The notes: generated from the sequence alone by a model not told the origin. A stretch of DNA of 64,000 nucleotides from Carpediemonas membranifera BICM (GCA_019828565.1 JAHDYR010000053.1:532214-596213), one strand, 5' to 3'. Positions 38,641-49,660 are shown, numbered from the stretch's first letter. Program-made: numbers and translations.

Positions 38641-40562
38641 CTAGAGTTTCTCGACGGGCTCGATGCCGAGGATGTCGAAGCACTTCTTCATCGTGAGCTG
38701 GGCGGCCAGCAGCATGTGCAGGCGGGACTCGCGCATGACGGCATCATCCGTGATCACACGGCACTTCTCGTAAAAGTCAGAGATCTTGACCGAGAGGTTG
38801 TAGAGGTAGTCGCACAACCGGTGGGGGTAGAGGTCCTTGAGGGTGCTGACCACCTCGTCCTGGAAGCGGGCGATGTGTATCATCAACGCGACCTCGGCCG
38901 CACGCTCCTCAGCGACCTCCGAGAGAACGATTGCCTCGGGTGTCTCGAGGAGAGCCTCCTTGGTCGTGCCGGCCTTGCCGAAGATGGAGGAGATGCGGGC
39001 GTACGCGTACATAAGGTAGACGGCGGTGTTGCCCTTGAGGTTGAGCATCCGGTCGAACGAGAAGACGTAATCCTTCGTCCGCTGCGAAGAGAGGTCGGCG
39101 TACTTCACAGCAGCGATGCCGACCTTCTGGGCGATCTCGGGCATCTCCTCCTCTGTCATACGGTTGGCCGACCGCTCCTTGAGGATAGCGTGGACCTTGC
39201 CCACCGCCTCATCCAACAGAAGCCGCAGCCCGACCGTGTCGCCCGACCGCGTCTTGAACTTCTGCCCACTGGTGTCCTTGACGAGGCCGAAGCCCACGTG
39301 GACGGCTTCGGGGTCGGGTCCCATCTCGACCCACCCCATGGCCTTTGCTGCGGCGAAGATGAGGTCAAAGTGGGGGGCTTGGCCGTGATCGGTGCAGTAC
39401 ACGATCTTGTCAGCGTGCAGGCGCTGGGTACGGTAGTAGATCGCGGCCATGTCGGTCGAATCGTATCCGTATCCACCGTCTGTCTTACGGAGGATCAAGG
39501 GGATCGAGGCGGACTGGCCCTTCTTGCTCTTGGGGGCGTCGGGGTCGGGCTTGCCGTCACGGAACCAGCAGAGGGCGCCGTTGTCGAGCTCGGCCTTGCC
39601 CTCGTCTTCCATCATCTTGATTACGACCGGGATGAGGGGGTTGTAGAAGGACTCGCCGCACTCGGCGATAGAGACCTTGAGCATGTCGTAGATGACCTGG
39701 AAATCGGCCCGGGAGAGCTCGCAGATCTTCTTCCAGGCGGCGTACTCGTCAGGGGAGTGGGATTGGAGCTTCACGACAGTGCGGCGGGCCTCCTCCTTGA
39801 ACTCGAGGTCCTCGTCGAAGTGGGCCTTCGCGCGCTTGTAGAAGGTGACCAGATCGCCGATATCGGGCATCTTCTCCTTGAAATCGGGCGCCTCGAGCTT
39901 GAGCTGGGCTATGAGCATGCCGAACTGCGTGCCCCAGTCGCCGACGTGGTTGGTACGGATCACAGCGGGCTTGGCGTTCTCGCCCTCGTCCTCGATAGCC
40001 TTCTCGACGGCGGCCCAATCACAGACGGGGTCGACATCGACGCCGCCTTCGGGGATGCCGAGGCAATACTCGTAGAGGCGGCAGATGGTGTCGCCGATAA
40101 TGGTGGAGCGAAGGTGTCCGACGTGGAGGGGCTGGGTAAGCGGTGGATGGTCATACAAACCTTGGCGATGTTGGGCGATGAAAAGTCGACGACGACGCGC
40201 TTGTAGGGAACCTCAGGGGGGATGGGGGAGCCAGTGGCCAGAAGACGCTTGATCTCGGCCTTGATGAAGTCCTCCTTGAGGTAGATGTTGATGAAACCGT
40301 TGACAGGCTCGCACTTCGCGATCACGTCGTTCTCGGGGACGTTGGCTGCGATCTCAGAGGCAACGTCGAAGGGAGACTTCTGCTCTGTCTTCGGCTTGCC
40401 CTTGTTGTGAAGCTTGGACAGCTGCATGGCGTTGTTGCACTGATAGTCACCGAATCCGGCACGCACGCTGACCATGATGATGGCGTTCACATTCTTCCCC
40501 GCGTACTTGGGAGCAACAATGTCTAGAGACTCCTGGAAGAGCTTTTGAAGCGTTACAAGCAT
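38641..40562 (-). CDS. RARS: Arginyl-tRNA synthetase (2 exons; intron 40132-40160)
   Basis: GDYQCNNAM; VVVDFSSPNIAK|PLHVGHLRSTIIG joined by a 29-bp GTTTGT..CTTACCCAG intron; NHVGDWGTQFG, KFKTRSG, GNTAVYLMYAYAR. Confidence 0.97.
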
Positions 40563-42089: not shown

Positions 42090-42227
42090 ATCCCGACGCC
42101 ATTGTGGCAACATTAGGTTCACGTTCATCGGATTGCTCCGGTCATGTCAAGGCCGTCGCCTTCCTGACCGACTACATCATGCTCACTATCACGAATTATG
42201 TCAGGCTGTGGGACAAGAGCGGCCTGT
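42090..42227 (+). pseudogene. Truncated WD40-family remnant
   Basis: SSDCSGHVKAVAFLTDYIMLTITNYVRLWDKSGL; DNA nearly identical to ~48805-48907. Confidence 0.85.
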
Positions 42228-42296
42228 CTCGCCGGAAGGTAATCCGATCAGCTCTTCAGGCCCTTATCCCCACAGTTTCGCAGTCCAAGGATACTG

Positions 42297-42380
42297 TGTG
42301 GTTTGGAAGAGAAAGAGTTTACGAGTAAAAAGAGGTTTGGACCCTCCCAGGGATATTGGTAGATATTAATACTGACTACA
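42297..42380 (-). repeat. 3' LTR (84 bp)
   Basis: Identical to 48247-48330. Confidence 0.97.
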
Positions 42381-42390
42381 CTTCCCCCCC
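42381..42390 (-). other. Polypurine tract
   Basis: GGGGGGGAAG on the minus strand directly abutting the 3' LTR. Confidence 0.9.
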
Positions 42391-43083
42391 ATGGCCAAGC
42401 AGTCGCGCGGCCATCACCACAACCAACATCTGGTATTACGTGGGGCTAGAGCCACCAATCGAACTTGGGATTACGCTCGCTCATGCCGAACCACTATTGG
42501 AATTATCGACGGGATAACGACAACCAACTTCTGGGATTACGTCTTATTGCAACCTCCAGGTGAGGTATTATGCGTAGTAAGGTGTGACCGAAAGATTCGA
42601 GGATGATATCAAAAAGATTCGGAAAAGATCTATGCAGCGCTGCTAATTAAGATATGGGTTCAGGAGCTCCTGTATAAGTATAAAAAGGACGTACCACAGC
42701 CCCGCCCCCTCGCGGGCACTCTGGGGCTCGCGCTCGACTCGGGAATTCTGGCCCCGAGCATTTTTAGGCATTTCGCCATCGCTCATACAGAAAGTTCTGG
42801 TACGTTGGGCTGATCCGCCCCATTCTTACACAGTGCCCGAAAAAGGGGTTTTCGAGCCCCAATTCGGCTTCGTTGGCGAGTTCTGACTCTTTTTGTTCTG
42901 CGCTGTACCGAAAGTTAACCAACATCATAAGCACTGCTCCACGGACGGTAGAAGTCTCGTGGACTGTGTTTGAGATATAAATATTGTGAATAGTCCGTCA
43001 TGGGGATCACTATGGGCACTTCCATTCGTCATTTGGGAAAAGTGCAGGATATGTCGCTTTTTCCTGAGGAAAAGCGGCCAAAC

Positions 43084-44171
43084 ATGGCGGATACGCGTGC
43101 GCTCGACCAAATTCGTGAGCTTTCGATGGAGTTAACTGATGACGATTATCGCAAGGTGCTCGAAAATGCCCTTGCGACGATTGCTCGGACGCAACGCTAT
43201 AAGGCCCGCACGATGAGCGCCCTGCAGAAGAGGGCCATCCGCAAGAGCGGCGGGAATGCCTCCCAGATGCCCATGATGCGGTTTGTGCGCCTCTATTCTT
43301 CTTACCTAGGATCTTCACCGTGCCGGCAACTTCCGCTCGGGAGCTCTGCCGTGTGCCGGTGGGGGGTGTGATGGAGGGGTGCTTCACGAAGCAGGCAGAC
43401 CAGCTCGCCGATGTGGTTCGACGGTGCTTGGCTGGCTACGTTAACTTCGTTGAGGTGCCCCTCGAGGGGATCTTCGATCACCTCTCCACCGGCACGCTGT
43501 GGAGCAAGGACGCAGGCGGCTTGCTCGATCTGTCAGCCGGCCTGCTGGTCCAGCTCCAGCGAGAGCATCGTGCGCTCCGCTTCCTGCGGGAGGCGTCTCG
43601 CAGCCGTGCCGAAACCGACTCCGGCATAGTCCGCGACGCCGTTGACGCCGGCGTTTTCGATCTCAAGGGCAACGGCTCAAACAGGTACGTCACCCCGGAG
43701 ACCCTGTTCTCGCTCTCCCGCGCTCTCGGCTGCGGCCAGAGCCTGGCCCGCCGCACCCTGTACCGGGTCGCCGTCTTGGCCCTCGCCCCAGACTACTACC
43801 GCTTGTTCCTCCACGGGGAGCGTAGCGAGAACGTCTCAGTCACCGCCACTCACTGGGCCGCCCTGGTCGCTAACCTCCGCGCCATGGACGAGCTTCCGTC
43901 CCTGCCGGAGCGGCTCGGTCTGGCCATGCAGGTCTCTGACCCTGAGCGCGAGTACGAGGTCCTTGACGTGCTGGGTCACGAGATCCTGACGGCTGGATCC
44001 GACCGCCGACTCATTCTTCACGTTCAGTACGCGGGCTACACTGCCCCTACCTGCACTGGTCTGGACGAGACCCTCGCTGCCGTCAGCGTGGCTCGCGAGT
44101 ATCTGATCGACTTTGAGCTCGAGGACTGGATCAAGGGCCCTGACGACGAGTCCGATGACGACTACCAATAA
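43084..44171 (+). CDS. Element-encoded antisense accessory protein (~352 aa) with C-terminal chromodomain-like region; predicted intron 43281-43309
   Basis: Removing GTTTGTGCGCCTCTATTCTTCTTACCTAG joins ORFs 43000-43371 and 43320-44171 in frame (..MPMMR|IFTVPATS..). C-terminus EREYEVLDVLGHE..LHVQYAGYTAPT..ETL..AREYL; AATAAA overlaps the stop codon; start could also be ATG 43000 or 43051. Confidence 0.75.
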
Positions 44172-44190
44172 ATCTTGATTGAGAATCCGT

Positions 44191-47100
44191 TTACTGCCTG
44201 GAGTGCGCAGCACGGTGTAGTTCTCTCTGCTCAAGAAAGTCCTCAAACTTGTCACAGCCATCGACATTCTCGAATGGCTCCCACGAAGCTTCGTCCGGCT
44301 CATAGCCCAGCCACTCAACCAAGTATTCGCGATTCTCGACCGGACCGGAGTCGGGCCGGGACTTCACAATCTTGCTCGGTATATACTCGGCCGCAACAGT
44401 GTTAGCCAAGCGAGTAACTTGCTCCACGGACATGTCGCCGTGATCGAACGGGAGGACCCGGGAAGCGTCGACCCTGAACTGCTTCAGAGATTCAAGGTCA
44501 CGCACAGTATAGGCAACAACCTTGTTGTACTCCTGGTGCACCGACACTAGTGCCATTGGGCCACGCAGGCCGGCGGCGAATTTGTCGGGTGGTCTGTCGG
44601 GGTAAGCCACCAGGACGTACGGAGTCGAAACCGTGGCACGGGCGTCCGGCCTGTACTGCTGTAGGAGCCGCTTGCTCTTAATGCGCTCGGCAGCCATGAG
44701 CCGGTACGCCTTGGCCTCGGACAGCCAGTCCTCTTGCTGGTCAACGATATACGTCTCACCCGGCGCGATAACGGTAATGTCCTTTGGCACTCGCATCTCG
44801 GTGCCATACAGGATCTCGGCTGGGGAGAGTCGAGTAGGGACTCGAGGGGTCGAGTTAACAAGGTATTGGGCAATCGGTAAGCTGTGGACCCAATCATTGG
44901 ATCTAAACTGGTAACGACGTGCTGTCAGGATGGACTTAACCGACACATTCGCTCGCTCTACTAACCCATTCGACTGGGGATGATGAGCCGTCGTCTTTCT
45001 CGTTGTAAACCCGAGTCGGGCACTCAGGTCGTTAAAGACTGCGTTGACGAACTGGGATCCTCCATCCGTCTGCAGTACCTTCGGTACGCCGTATCGGAGG
45101 ACCCAGTTATTGACAAACGCCCTGGACGTCTCGACCGCTCGGGTAGTCTGGAGCGGGACAAGCTCAGTCCAACGTGAGCACATGTCTATTACAACGAGGA
45201 TATACTTATAGGTCGTGCCGTCGACCGTGCACGAGGTAGCGGACATAGTGTCCATGGCCACTCGGTCGAAGGGGTGCTCGACCGCGGTGTGCAAACCCGC
45301 ATCGGAAGAGGCCGGGGGCTTACGCCTTAACTGGCATATTGGGCACTTGGCGATATAGTCGTCCACGTCCTTCTGGCGGACACGTACGCCCCAGTCTCGA
45401 AGAAGGTTCTTGGTCGCCCAGGCGGACAAGTGAGCCCCGGCGAAGTGATGCGCCTTCTGCAGCCTGTCCGCGACTTGGGTATCGAGGGTGTTAGCGAACA
45501 CGCGAGAAAGGCCATCTGCTGCCCCGTTGTCAACACCCGGAACGTGACGTATGGTGAAATCGAGGTCAGCTAGTTGGTCGTACCATCTACGGACCTTGGG
45601 GTTGATGGACTTGGCCATGAACAGCAGGTTGCGGTGATCAGTACGGATGGTAAAGTGCGTCCACGAGAGGAATTTCCGCCAACGCTGGACGGCCAGGATG
45701 ATTGCGTAGGCTTCCTGCTCTGTGGTACTCCACCTAGTCTGGACCGCGGAGAATGCGTGGGACATGAAAGCGATCGGCTGCCCGTCCTGTAGTAATACGG
45801 CGCCGCATCCCACGTCTGAGGCATCGGTCATGAGGACATGTGTCGCGTCCGTCTTGAAGTGAACGAGGGAGACCCGCTTAAGGAGCTCGGCGATAACGTC
45901 GCCCAGGGCCGCTTGCTGACCCGGCCCACCGGGTTCGGCCTTGCCAGCCGACACCTGCAACAGAGGATGAGCTCGGGACGCGAAGTTGGGCACGAAGTCA
46001 CGGAAATAATTGAGGAAACCGACGAGTGCCTGTGCGGACCGCTTGCTGGTCGGTAGTTTCAGCTTCTTAATGTCGTCGATGCGGTCTTCGGCAATCCTCA
46101 CGGTGTCTCCGGACACGAGTCGACCCAGGAACTCGACCTCAGCCGCGGCGAAGACGCACTTATCGCGACCTAGGTGTAGGTCATACTCTTGGCAACGTTT
46201 CAGGACGTCCCATAGGTTCCTTATGTAGGAAGGCTCGTCCCGACCCATGACAATAATGTCATCGATGTAAATAAGGCACTTCCCTGCCGAGATCAGGTCG
46301 GAGAAAGCCTGCTCCATGGCCCACTGGAAATGAGAACCAGCGTTACGCAGACCAAAGGGCATAGTCGTGTACTCAAACCGTCCAAGGGGAGTCCCGAAGG
46401 CGGTCAGAGGACGAGAACGGTCCGTCAGTGCCACCTGATGGTAGCCGGCCTTGCAGTCGAGCGTAGCAAAGATGGTATTACCCCTGAGCTTAGCTAGACA
46501 ATCCTCTATGATCGGGATAGGGTAGTTGAACGGGGAGTCTTCGCGTTGACCAAACGGAAGTCGATAACGAACCGGGTACGGTCCTTCCCCTTTGGGACCA
46601 AGAATGCCGGTGAGGAGTAAGCCGATGCTGATGGCTGGATGAAGCCATGTCGGGACAGGTCGTCAAGGTGTTCCTGGAGAAGTGTCTTCTTCTCCGGCGG
46701 CATGAAGAACTCGCGGCTAAAGACGGGTTCATCATCAGACAAGACTAGATCGTAAGGGATGAGCTTACTCGGACGCCCTACTCTGTCCTCGAACAGGCCG
46801 ACAAACCGCGCGAGCAGTCTGTCCTGAAGGGAAGACGACTTGTCAGACAAGGTGAATAGGCTCAACTTCTGGGGAGTAATGACCGTTGAGACGTCTTCAG
46901 CCTGCTCGGCGTCATTGGCGTCAGACTCCTCGCAGTCGTCAATCTGAGGAAGGATCCCCAGGGTGACCATATCAGGGTACCCAATGATTAGATCGTACTC
47001 TGAGGGTAGGAGGTACGCACGAGTAGTAAAGGTGCACCCACGGGGGACCAGAGCTGATTTGGCAAAGGTTACTTCGGTGGAAATAGTCTGGTCGACTGTG

Positions 47101-48230
47101 ATGACTCCAGCCGGTGTCGTCACCTCGACCGGGTCACAATGCAGGATCTTTTCGCCGGACCTCTCGGCCACTTGCGGCGATATGAAGGTTGCTGACGCGC
47201 CACAGTCGAACAACATCGACTCTGCGCTGGTCCTGTATATGGATCCTGACACAATCGGAAGAGCCTGCGCTCTGCGTTTGCTAGACGCCGCGAAACAAGA
47301 CAAATAAGAATAGTTCTGGACCTTTATACGGTCACAGAACTCTCTCTTGTGGCCCTCGCGCCCGCACTTCTCACACTTGGACTTGGGCTTCCGGCACTCG
47401 GGGCTGAAATGGCCCTTGCCCCCGCAGTTGTAACAGGTTGGGGTCGTGCTGGTAGGGCGAGCCCGATCGCGGGACCGCTTGTCCGGGCGGTGATGGTCAT
47501 GCGGGCGGTCACGACGGTCGTAGGGGCGGTCTCGGCGGTCATCTCGGCGGTCACGACGGTCGCGCTGGTTACGGCTCTGGCCGCGTTGCGGATGGGCGCC
47601 TGGCACGGGCGCTGTCGGACGGCGCGACTGATCGGAGCGGATCGCCTCGGTGAACGGAGCAAGGTACTCAGCCGACTCGGCTACGTCGCGTGCCGTCTTC
47701 ATGGTGTATTGCTGGGTCTCCGCCAGTGAGCAACCCTCAGTCTGCTCCTTCAGTCTGTAGTAGAGGGATTGGCCCTTCACAGCAAAGGCCCGCAAGTAGG
47801 CTTCACGAATGGTGTCATCCTCGTCCATGTTAAGGCACTCCAACAAGGTGTTGAACTGCGAGTTGAGCTTCGACACCTCGAGCGGCGTGAACGCCGCGAT
47901 GCGCAGCCTGATAAGGTTCAGGCATTGTTCCTTTCTGGTGGGGCGCAAGGCAGCGGCGAGTCGCTGCATGATGATCTTCTCTCTGAGCTTGCGTGATGAA
48001 GTGGAAGGTTCGTCGTCATGTTGGTCACCCTGAGGAAGCGGAACCTCCTCTAGGGTCTCTAAGCCTAGCACTTGTGATGCATAGGACTGGATCTCCGGGC
48101 TTATAAGCTTGCGGAGCTTCGCCTTACCTCCTCTAGCCTTAAAGTCACGCAGTGACGTCGTAAAAGCTACGAAAGCGCTGAATGTTGCCTCTTTCAGGAG
48201 CGGCGCTTGTTTTTTCTGTTCTCTACCCAT
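44191..48230 (-). CDS. Gag-Pol polyprotein (one 1-bp frameshift at ~46532-46535 inside RT)
   Basis: Two CCHC knuckles (CYNCGGKGHFSPEC, CEKCGREGHKREFC); protease LFDCGA; RT SSPAFLVPK..FVIDFR / YPIPII..GYHQ, MPFGL, YIDD; RNase H TDASDVG, RTDH, ADGLSR; integrase HHCC + DDE; chromodomain EYLVEWLGYEPDEASWEP. Confidence 0.95.
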
Positions 48231-48246
48231 AGGTAAGTACTAGTAC

Positions 48247-48330
48247 TGTGGTTTGGAAGAGAAAGAGTTTACGAGTAAAAAGAGGTTTGGACCCTCCCAG
48301 GGATATTGGTAGATATTAATACTGACTACA
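48247..48330 (-). repeat. 5' LTR (84 bp)
   Basis: Minus strand TGTAGTCAGT...CCAAACCACA, identical to 42297-42380. Confidence 0.97.
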
Positions 48331-48520
48331 ACTGTGTCACATGACCGTACCCTGTCTCCCTGGCACCATGGCGCTACATCACCTCACCTGTCAACTTGGC
48401 TGACGCCACCCACAAGAGACGATTGATTGTTGCGCGGCTCCGCCGACTGTCTTCAGTGAGGAGACCGAGGTTTCTAAAGTAAATAGTGCAGTTTATGCTC
48501 GCAACAAGGTGAAGGACGGG

Positions 48521-49660
48521 ATGGTTGAAACTATAGACATTATTGTCGTTATCGCTACAGTTATTGGCGTGATTGTCGGCATTATTGTTGGGATTGTTAC
48601 CACGATCGGCGTCTATATCGCTTACAAGCAATATAAGCTCAGCAAGAAGCAAGCTCGTGTTCAAGTACACACAGAGGATCCAGAATCGGGTGGGGCGTTG
48701 GATCAAACCAGCTACCAACTGATTTCCGACGACAACGAGACAGACGATGCGAGCGCCAGCTCGATTGTTTCCCCCGACGCCGGTGGAATAGTGGCGACGG
48801 TACATTCATCTGATTGCAGCGGCCATGTCAAGGCCGTCGCCTTCCTGACCAACGACATCATGCTCACTATCACGAATTACGTCAGGCTGTGGGACAAGAG
48901 CGGCCTGTGTATTGGTAAGATGGAACACAGCAACGAGTTTTCCATTGACAATATCGCCGTCTTCAAGGGCACGCCCAATGATAAGTTGATTGCAGCAGGG
49001 AGAGGTTCTGGAGAGATCCTGTTGTGGAAGGCGGATGGCACACTGCTCAGGACCTTCAACGGAAGTAACCAAAATGTGACCGGGCCCGCATTCTCCCAAG
49101 ACGGTACAAAACTGGTGCATGGATCCAGTGACTGGGCAGTCAGGATGTGGAACGTCGCCACCGGCGAGTGCACGACGATGGCAGGGCACAGCGATACAGT
49201 CATCTCCGTCGCTATCTCCCCCGACGGCAAGACCATCGTCTCTGGGTCATGCGATAATACGATCAAGGTGTGGGACGCTGGGTCGGGCAGACTCGAGCAG
49301 ACTCTGGAGGGGCACGATCGTTGGGTTTCCAGTGTTGCCTTTTCCCCAGACGGCGCTTTGCTGGCCTCTGGGTCGTACGACAACACCATCAAACTCTGGG
49401 ACACCAGGACCTGGGAGTGCGTCGCCGTTCTCACTGATCATCGTGACGAGGTCTTTTGTGTCGCCTTCTCACCGACTGACGGCAGGGTCCTCGCCTCCGG
49501 ATCAAAAGACACGACTGCCAAACTGTGGAATATTGAGCGCCGCGTGTGCTACCATACAATCGATTGTGATAACATGGTGTTCAGCCTCGCCTTCTCCCCG
49601 GACGGGTCGACCCTGCTCCATGGCTGTGAAACGACGGCCAAGCTGTATCGAGTCCCATAA
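48521..49660 (+). CDS. N-terminally TM-anchored WD40-repeat protein (HET-E-like WD repeats)
   Basis: IIVVIATVIGVIVGIIVGIVTTIGVYIAYKQYK, acidic linker, ~7 repeats of GHxxxVxSVAFSPDGxxLASGSxDxTIKLW. Confidence 0.9.
   Translation: MVETIDIIVVIATVIGVIVGIIVGIVTTIGVYIAYKQYKLSKKQARVQVHTEDPESGGALDQTSYQLISDDNETDDASASSIVSPDAGGIVATVHSSDCSGHVKAVAFLTNDIMLTITNYVRLWDKSGLCIGKMEHSNEFSIDNIAVFKGTPNDKLIAAGRGSGEILLWKADGTLLRTFNGSNQNVTGPAFSQDGTKLVHGSSDWAVRMWNVATGECTTMAGHSDTVISVAISPDGKTIVSGSCDNTIKVWDAGSGRLEQTLEGHDRWVSSVAFSPDGALLASGSYDNTIKLWDTRTWECVAVLTDHRDEVFCVAFSPTDGRVLASGSKDTTAKLWNIERRVCYHTIDCDNMVFSLAFSPDGSTLLHGCETTAKLYRVP

Follow-up and report, generated by a model that had tools for sequence, protein, structure and literature searches.

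An antisense accessory gene with a predicted intron and a predicted chromo-like C-terminus in a chromovirus of the metamonad Carpediemonas membranifera

Antisense open reading frames (ORFs) located between pol and the 3' long terminal repeat (LTR) represent an established class in the LTR retrotransposons of plants and fungi, and include maize Grande gene23, rice RIRE2, Retand of Silene and other angiosperms (with a TRP28 domain), and Botrytis Boty (PMC7264820, PMC11963269). Genes of this aORF-3R class have their own upstream promoter, as shown for Grande, whose protein is nuclear, and their function is suspected to be regulatory (PMC7264820, PMC11963269). A comparable arrangement is found in Carpediemonas membranifera BICM, in a stretch of 64,000 nucleotides (GCA_019828565.1 JAHDYR010000053.1:532214-596213) referred to below as the window. 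Here, a Ty3/gypsy chromovirus on the minus strand (42297-48330) carries a two-exon gene on the plus strand, which lies opposite gag-pol, inside the LTR-bounded unit, between the polypurine tract and the pol stop codon. By position, strand, copy conservation and coding evolution, this accessory gene belongs to the aORF-3R class.

The likeness to aORF-3R genes covers the position, the orientation and the retention of the ORF in most copies of a family. Unlike them, the C. membranifera gene encodes a protein with no sequence relation to the described members and no match to TRP28 or any other Pfam family, resides in a metamonad protist, and is carried by a chromovirus with 84-bp LTRs rather than by a Tat/Retand-type element with a long internal region. 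It also has a predicted spliceosomal intron, whereas the word "intron" is absent from the main text of the two papers on the class (PMC7264820, PMC11963269), and its product ends in a predicted chromo-like domain. A literature search returned no paper describing the C. membranifera gene; what is new here is the metamonad host, a protein family without relatives, the predicted intron, the predicted chromo-like C-terminus, and the range of element families that carry it within a single genome. Retroviral antisense genes, such as HBZ of human T-cell leukaemia virus type 1 (HTLV-1), are likewise protein-coding on the strand opposite the retroelement genes. HBZ is produced from a spliced transcript that starts in or near the 3' LTR, and it acts in the nucleus. 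Unlike HBZ, a bZIP protein of a vertebrate retrovirus with a 3' LTR promoter, the present gene would use an internal promoter, appears to have its intron within the coding sequence (CDS), and encodes an unrelated protein.

The gene comprises the following parts, with positions counted from the first nucleotide of the window and the ratio of nonsynonymous to synonymous substitution rates (dN/dS) given against subfamily B of the element (see below):
43084..43280, plus strand: exon 1 CDS, with its ATG at 43084, 65 codons plus 2 nt, dN/dS 0.10
43281..43309, plus strand: predicted spliceosomal intron, phase 2, 29 nt, GTTTGTGCGCCTCTATTCTTCTTACCTAG, whose removal restores the frame
43310..44171, plus strand: exon 2 CDS, with TAA at 44169-44171, 286 codons after the split codon, dN/dS 0.16
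44172..44190, no strand: spacer of 19 bp between the convergent stops

The exon 1 ORF lies in frame 1 and the exon 2 ORF in frame 0, and removal of 43281-43309 yields 352 codons. These ORF positions and frames, the in-frame join and a product of about 352 aa had been given in a preliminary description of this DNA and were reproduced exactly; the 19-bp gap to the converging pol gene, also claimed there, is the spacer at 44172-44190, and the proposed placement inside the LTRs, from the pol stop to the polypurine tract, agrees with the identical LTRs (42297-42380 and 48247-48330) that bound the unit. The same description saw an accessory gene with a coding unit of its own, and the gene is indeed independently encoded, antisense and under purifying selection, with a predicted intron. 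Its start had been placed at 43084, where there is an ATG; further in-frame ATGs occur at 43000, 43012 and 43045, and translation may begin at either 43045 or 43084. Exon 1 encodes a predicted N-terminal helix and a basic patch (KRAIRK) resembling a nuclear localisation signal (NLS). The proteins encoded here are identical to GenBank KAG939xxxx entries annotated as "hypothetical protein J8273_...".

Copies of the gene were sought in the whole genome (24.2 Mb, 69 contigs). Subfamily A comprises 13 copies that are 99.9-100% identical over 42381-44190, and exon 2 is fully open and 100% identical in 12 of them. Subfamily B, with approximately 82% nucleotide identity to A, keeps both exons open as well as a 29-nt intron, so that ORF and intron are conserved beyond the young copies. 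Between A and B (Nei-Gojobori method), dN/dS is 0.10 in exon 1, where the proportions of differing synonymous (pS) and nonsynonymous (pN) sites are 0.69 and 0.17 (Fisher p 2e-10), and 0.16 in exon 2 (pS 0.54 versus pN 0.13; Fisher p 8e-31). Across the gene the ratio is about 0.10-0.17, which is not the pattern of neutral decay. A chance ORF or the transduction of a host gene is ruled out by copy number, selection and conservation across families, and it is nearly certain that this is a real protein-coding accessory gene. It could also be supposed that the antisense RNA itself is functional, acting in copy-number control through double-stranded or small interfering RNA or through transcriptional interference, and that the ORF is incidental. 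Antisense transcripts of retroelements can be regulatory (PMC7264820), and overlap of a transcript of this gene with the genomic RNA is unavoidable, with overlap of the 3' end of pol also probable. However, a function confined to RNA does not predict coding conservation, and the strong codon-level selection, together with frames that remain open at 25-36% identity in many families with their domain architecture kept, renders this explanation very improbable, even if RNA and protein roles could coexist.

The distribution of the gene extends well beyond these two subfamilies. Exon 2, searched against the genome in six frames, gave 115 matches, among them families at 33-36% and at 25-27% protein identity, and no fewer than six other element families have a homologue (25-36% protein identity) in antisense orientation immediately behind pol. 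Of the ten loci fetched, nine gave a tblastn match and have the homologue directly past the pol stop on the opposite strand, and the tenth (L035, family G) has a 489-aa antisense ORF at the equivalent place; the gene is thus carried by subfamily B and by families C-G. The trees of reverse transcriptase (RT) and of the accessory protein are compatible, with (F,G) set against (A, C, D/E), and the gene is therefore older than the split of the element families. It evolves several times faster than RT, is under purifying selection and has diverged together with RT across families.

The predicted intron has the form GTTTGT...CTTACCTAG, with the splice signals GTTTGT..CTTACNNAG, and shows the features of host-type introns: GT..AG ends, a GTTTGT or GTAAGT donor, a CTNAC branch-like box, a length of 28-35 nt, and a frame that is restored on removal. 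The preliminary description had likened it to the intron of the host ArgRS gene (40132-40160, minus strand), which is indeed equal in length (29 nt) and in its ends and likewise joins its exons in frame, the N-terminal and catalytic Pfam domains of ArgRS lying on either side. Two occurrences of GTTTGT-N12-20-CTTACNNAG in the window compare with 0.01 expected, and 76 in the genome with 6 for the reversed control; about half of the 76 sites are in host genes and half in element copies. In subfamily B the intron also measures 29 nt and keeps GTTTGT, CTTAC and AG despite changes at 7 of 29 bases and heavily diverged flanking codons. A 33-nt intron, GTAAGT...CTAAC...TAG, shares this phase and place in family C, where it directly follows the basic patch, and families D and E, which have GTAAGT donors at this place and in-frame acceptors 33-48 nt downstream, probably carry a matching intron. 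In families F and G, the homologous N-terminal helix and basic patch are contained within one continuous ORF of 453-489 aa.

Three GenBank models (KAG9391677.1, KAG9392079.1 and KAG9395287.1) use the inferred junctions exactly; the junctions are those of P0003 (338 aa, ...PMMR joined to IFTVPATS), P0005 (364 aa) and P0007 (300 aa, ...KTAKN joined to ATITT), and P0003 and P0005 include exon 1. The annotation pipeline for C. membranifera used RNA-seq intron hints and PASA (PMC8516963), and the junctions are suggestive of splicing. They fall short of proof because models of other copies, P0001 and P0002 (266-267 aa), begin at an internal Met and omit exon 1, which speaks against the two-exon structure. 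The latter models, made for several copies, would favour a gene in which expression is confined to the second ORF, starting from an internal Met at 43371 (MEGCFTK..., 266 aa), with the intron unused and exon 1 serving as an upstream ORF or leader. Such a gene would not account for the purifying selection on exon 1 (dN/dS 0.10, p 2e-10), for an intron whose length and splice signals persist while the flanking codons diverge, for the family C intron of equal phase and place, or for the N-terminal helix and basic patch that families F and G encode continuously with the rest of the protein, and it is accordingly improbable. Splicing of the intron as modelled is very likely, judging from these sequence features. 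The intron is present in all young copies, consistent with the earlier claim that it persists through retrotransposition: since the genomic RNA contains it in antisense, splicing cannot remove it from that RNA, and it is copied unchanged each time.

The protein appears to be specific to this lineage. Word-indexed searches of 5.8 billion proteins with the protein and with its profile recovered C. membranifera entries only, and HMMER searches of 1.84 billion representatives gave five matches, four being C. membranifera paralogues and the fifth a marginal ENA protein matched in multiple stretches, which was taken as spurious. The family adds a lineage-specific gene set, and Carpediemonas membranifera is so far the only organism known to have it. 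AlphaFold2 modelling of the whole protein on an alignment of eight family sequences gave a mean predicted local distance difference test (pLDDT) score of 64.6 and four parts: a low-confidence long N-terminal helix with a linker, a helical block (residues 81-244), a module of strands and helix (259-320), and a disordered acidic tail. The last three correspond to the following segments:
43395..43886, plus strand: central all-helical domain of about 165 aa, AlphaFold2 helices 81-244, block pLDDT 55-90
43929..44117, plus strand: C-terminal chromo-like domain, predicted three beta strands and a helix, with Tyr/Tyr/Tyr at the presumed aromatic-cage positions
44136..44168, plus strand: acidic C-terminal tail, GPDDESDDDYQ

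The tail, noted as acidic in the preliminary description, is so in families A, B, D and E and not in C. The N-terminal region had been called unrecognised, and no Pfam family was found on any piece. The central helical domain has no recognisable fold or family and no Pfam or PDB sequence match. Fold candidates for it, from Foldseek with the whole model, a wide search in VIA, a shape search of the ESM Atlas and a language-model search, were weak or generic, such as KorB (Z 5.0, root-mean-square deviation (rmsd) 4.8 Å) and fragments of chromoviral integrases with low TM scores, and were set aside.

The C-terminal module, folded alone with AlphaFold2, reached a pLDDT of 81.7. About 40 of the top 50 Foldseek matches to it are chromo or chromoshadow domains, including the HP1a chromoshadow domain, MPP8, Swi6, Oxpecker, Rhino, CBX, Chp1 and cpSRP43, with probabilities up to 0.98 and rmsd values of 2.2-3.1 Å. 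After re-alignment with VIA, the top 50 rows are all chromo or chromoshadow domains (Z 5.8-6.8, rmsd 1.8-2.7 Å, 50-56 residues), and a wide search independent of Foldseek with the whole model placed the Oxpecker and Chp1 chromodomains first (Z 5.1, rmsd about 2 Å, 21-24% identity). A three-stranded antiparallel sheet packed against a C-terminal helix is present in the predicted models. The seven families, when aligned, all keep the pattern Tyr-x25-[Tyr/Phe]-x-[Gly/Asn]-[Tyr/Phe], and it is collinear, within one residue, with the Y...W-x-G-Y pattern of the element's own integrase chromodomain. The presumed cage columns are Tyr, Tyr/Phe and Tyr/Phe in 7/7 families, their equivalence to HP1 Y24/W45/Y48 being assigned by aligned ranges and residue counting. 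Both canonical chromodomain Trp residues are absent, the cage Trp being replaced by Tyr or Phe, so that the loss of Trp claimed earlier holds for these two positions; the domain is not free of Trp, as one residue past the last helix is invariant.

Several results weigh against a chromo-like assignment. The Foldseek E-values range from 0.14 to 0.95, every one above 0.1, and Z scores of 6-7 fall in the range that the tool terms "middling". The AlphaFold2 models were built on alignments of 7-8 sequences from a single genome. None of the protein pieces or family members matches Pfam at E values up to 10, PDB sequence profile searches yielded nothing relevant, and a six-frame genome scan with PF00385 recovered the integrase domain at 44230-44385 and nothing on the plus strand. 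The comparison with the integrase chromodomains of the elements by hhalign gave a probability of 0.3%, and in sequence the module has no homology to any chromodomain or other family. Furthermore, this small fold is common to chromoshadow domains, which dimerise rather than read histones. On the predicted models, a chromo-like fold is nonetheless the likely assignment. The chromodomain-like C-terminus of the preliminary description is therefore upheld by the predicted fold (Z 5.8-6.8 in VIA), examined by the AlphaFold and Foldseek comparison that it had called for and in which the helical part gave only weak rows, and is not upheld by the sequence (no Pfam match, hhalign 0.3%).

Compared with the chromodomains of HP1, Chp1 and Rhino and with the HP1 chromoshadow domain, the predicted fold superposes at an rmsd of about 2 Å over nearly the whole domain of some 55 residues, and aromatic residues occupy the three presumed cage positions. 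Unlike these, it has no sequence homology to them, both canonical Trp residues are replaced, and it forms the C-terminus of an otherwise unknown helical transposon protein. The element itself provides a further comparison:
44230..44385, minus strand: integrase chromodomain, Pfam; six-frame PF00385 match, C39:576443-576598

The accessory module shares with this domain the predicted fold class and, within one residue, the Y...[aromatic]-x-G-Y spacing, and their coding segments are opposed on either side of the 19-bp spacer. Unlike the integrase chromodomain, it is part of a separate polypeptide and presumably of a separate transcript. An origin by inverted duplication of the integrase chromodomain is unsupported, since BLASTP against the elements' integrase chromodomains was null (E 0.41) and hhalign gave the 0.3% mentioned above. 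The element thus carries a Pfam-recognised integrase chromodomain and, according to the models, a second, chromo-like module; the earlier notion of a two-chromodomain element is supported in this sense of a predicted fold and lacks a counterpart in sequence homology.

The fold alone does not identify a histone reader. Chromodomain and chromoshadow matches are tied within 0.3 Z, and reader and dimeriser are consequently indistinguishable. The C-terminal module may be a chromoshadow-like dimerisation or peptide-docking domain, and the protein an adaptor for integrase, Gag or a host factor, for example in nuclear import or in assembly of the integration complex. Such an adaptor would be in keeping with the HP1a chromoshadow domain as the top structural match (Foldseek probability 0.98; Z 6.8 over 56 residues), with the two short C-terminal helical elements that end the model, with the Leu, Leu and Trp residues behind the helix, which are invariant across all families, and with the long N-terminal helix as a possible coiled coil. 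However, chromodomains match as well, and the three presumed cage positions are aromatic across families with 25% identity, although a shadow domain has no need of them; we regard the adaptor as rather unlikely. Binding of methyl-lysine or histones by a chromo-like module is itself a tentative proposal, drawn from the models. A predicted complex of the domain with the unmodified host histone H3 tail (residues 1-45) scored 0.13 versus a mark of 0.34, which is no evidence either way.

No Pre-SET Pfam match and no chromoshadow match (PF01393) were found in the genome, which counts against an action on chromatin in that a host system of histone H3 lysine 9 methylation and HP1 is at most putative. 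Host histone H3 (L040:1474-1890, G000:C24) departs from the canonical ARKS, with ARKQ around K9 and ARKT around K27, and these variants bear on any hypothesis of a reader domain. Pfam Chromo matches number at least 150 in the 24 Mb of the genome, with 536 candidates at first look. Almost all of them stand at the end of a long pol-like frame, but some short frames of about 290-380 aa also have one (for example C7:137911, C8:189517, C30:171747 and C67:671186) and could be host chromodomain proteins. C. membranifera draws interest for its lack of canonical replication-origin and kinetochore proteins (PMC8516963).

Comparison of subfamilies A and B (the latter represented by L018-L022) revealed an island of divergence that coincides with the accessory gene. 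The CDS is 69-87% identical in nucleotide sequence (synonymous divergence, dS, 0.9-1.8) with sharp borders, versus 88-100% identity in the upstream block at 42394-43083 and 89-100% in the 3' 1.5 kb of pol (dS 0.26-0.38); the difference in synonymous divergence between CDS and pol has a p value of 4e-13. When L024, a third lineage, is the reference, the divergence of pol equals that of the accessory gene, with a dS of 0.8 each. The simplest reading is recombination between lineages, which left old accessory alleles in otherwise similar elements, and the gene is possibly a specificity or conflict module. The pattern recurs in family D, where sub-lineages L031, L032 and L039 have near-identical RT (branch lengths 0-0.006) and clearly different accessory proteins, the accessory gene again being more diverged than pol. 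Old allelic cassettes kept or exchanged by recombination are what would be expected of such a module, and the island (69-87% versus 88-100% in the flanks, dS 0.9 versus 0.26-0.38, p 4e-13) therefore fits a protein that acts in self-limitation, copy-number control or competition between families by marking or silencing its own or rival copies. Simple recombination between lineages without any conflict produces the same island, however, and the dN/dS values, far under 1, show no trace of positive selection at the resolution reached here, so that this role seems distinctly unlikely.

The upstream region contains two further features:
42394..43083, plus strand: conserved non-coding block with a TATA-like box, TATAAGTATAAAAAGG, at 42673-42688; probable promoter and 5' untranslated region (UTR), the promoter function being inferred
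42800..42833, plus strand: weak candidate 5' UTR intron of 34 nt, GTACGT..CTTACACAG, a motif also present in subfamily B (L037)

The block is far more conserved than the synonymous sites of the CDS, and represents either a cis element or promoter under strong constraint, or a tract that recombined recently. The high conservation of these 0.7 kb and the TATA-like box fit a promoter or cis-acting role. An intron-like 33-mer, GTTTGTGCTCCTCT..CTTACATAG (L035:8627-8659, minus strand), occurs in family G about 380 nt upstream of the ATG and is similar to the coding intron of family A; the presumed 5' UTR may contain a second intron.

The carrier is a chromovirus, with the order gag(CCHC)-protease-RT-RNase H-integrase, a Chromo domain at the C-terminus, LTRs and a duplicated target site. 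Its parts, other than the integrase chromodomain, are as follows:
42297..42380, minus strand: 3' LTR, 84 bp, TG..CA ends, 100% identical to 48247-48330
42381..42393, minus strand: polypurine tract, cttccccccccat, with its C-rich complement on the plus strand, abutting the 3' LTR
44191..46434, minus strand: pol 3' ORF (RT, RNase H, integrase, chromodomain), Pfam RVT_1, RT_RNaseH, rve and Chromo (E 5.7e-10)
46506..48230, minus strand: gag-protease ORF, Pfam zf-CCHC and Asp_protease
48247..48330, minus strand: 5' LTR, 84 bp, identical to the 3' LTR

The pol stop codon occupies 44191-44193 (minus strand), and the 4-bp target duplication ACTG is present at 42293-42296 and 48331-48334. In a comparison of 16 copies, the LTR edge is the point at which the flanks become unrelated; the 1.8 kb from the polypurine tract to the pol stop is consequently part of the element. 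A sister copy (L052, G000:C39:835300-841400) has a single gag-pol ORF of 1349 aa, and over the whole 6 kb its sole difference from the window copy is one base missing from the latter near 46531. This loss, whether a genuine inactivating deletion or an error of the long-read assembly, splits gag-pol into ORFs of 574 and 747 aa and leaves the accessory gene of the window copy intact. The LTRs are only 84 bp long, yet the element has clearly been active recently, with 13 near-identical copies. Only 16 bases separate the 5' LTR from the gag ATG, with scant room for a transfer RNA primer-binding site, and the LTRs of subfamily B are about 82% identical to those of A, with the ends TGTAGTC..GACTACA. 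Outside the element, a 107-bp direct repeat (93% identical) lies at unequal distances on either side (42121-42227 and 48802-48908); its right copy is inside a WD40 gene (48509-49660), and the left flank therefore holds a fragment of a related gene.

Taken as a whole, the evidence moderately favours a real spliced accessory gene whose chromo-like protein acts for the element on chromatin or on a chromatin-linked partner. In the proposed sequence of events, a promoter in the conserved 0.7-kb upstream block would drive the antisense gene, and splicing would join the N-terminal helix and NLS-like patch to the helical domain and to the chromo-like domain with its aromatic triad. The protein would then enter the nucleus, where the chromo-like domain would bind chromatin or a partner bearing methyl-lysine, and it would act in trans for the element. 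It might assist the integration complex, next to the integrase chromodomain, in selecting or retaining a target; alternatively, it might modulate the chromatin state of element copies. Any one specific role, whether targeting cofactor, anti-silencing factor or self-limiting factor, is at best doubtful when considered singly, and the anti-silencing or HP1-decoy function and the integration-cofactor function put forward earlier are speculation.

A bolder interpretation, which we consider unlikely, is that a clade of protist chromoviruses encodes a separately transcribed HP1-like reader as an exchangeable specificity cassette, working with or against the integrase chromodomain. Conflict with host silencing or with rival families would then explain why old, diverged alleles persist in near-identical elements. 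If true, it would give an antisense retrotransposon gene an assignable biochemical activity for the first time, and would provide the first stand-alone chromo-reader borne by a transposon. The known antisense ORFs of LTR elements have no assigned function and no recognisable domain beyond TRP28. The present family offers a signature of selection, deep conservation across element families, a predicted antisense intron carried through reverse transcription, and a predicted chromo-like module with an aromatic triad; together, these turn an unknown accessory protein into a concrete hypothesis that can be tested through histone-peptide binding, nuclear localisation and an effect on targeting.

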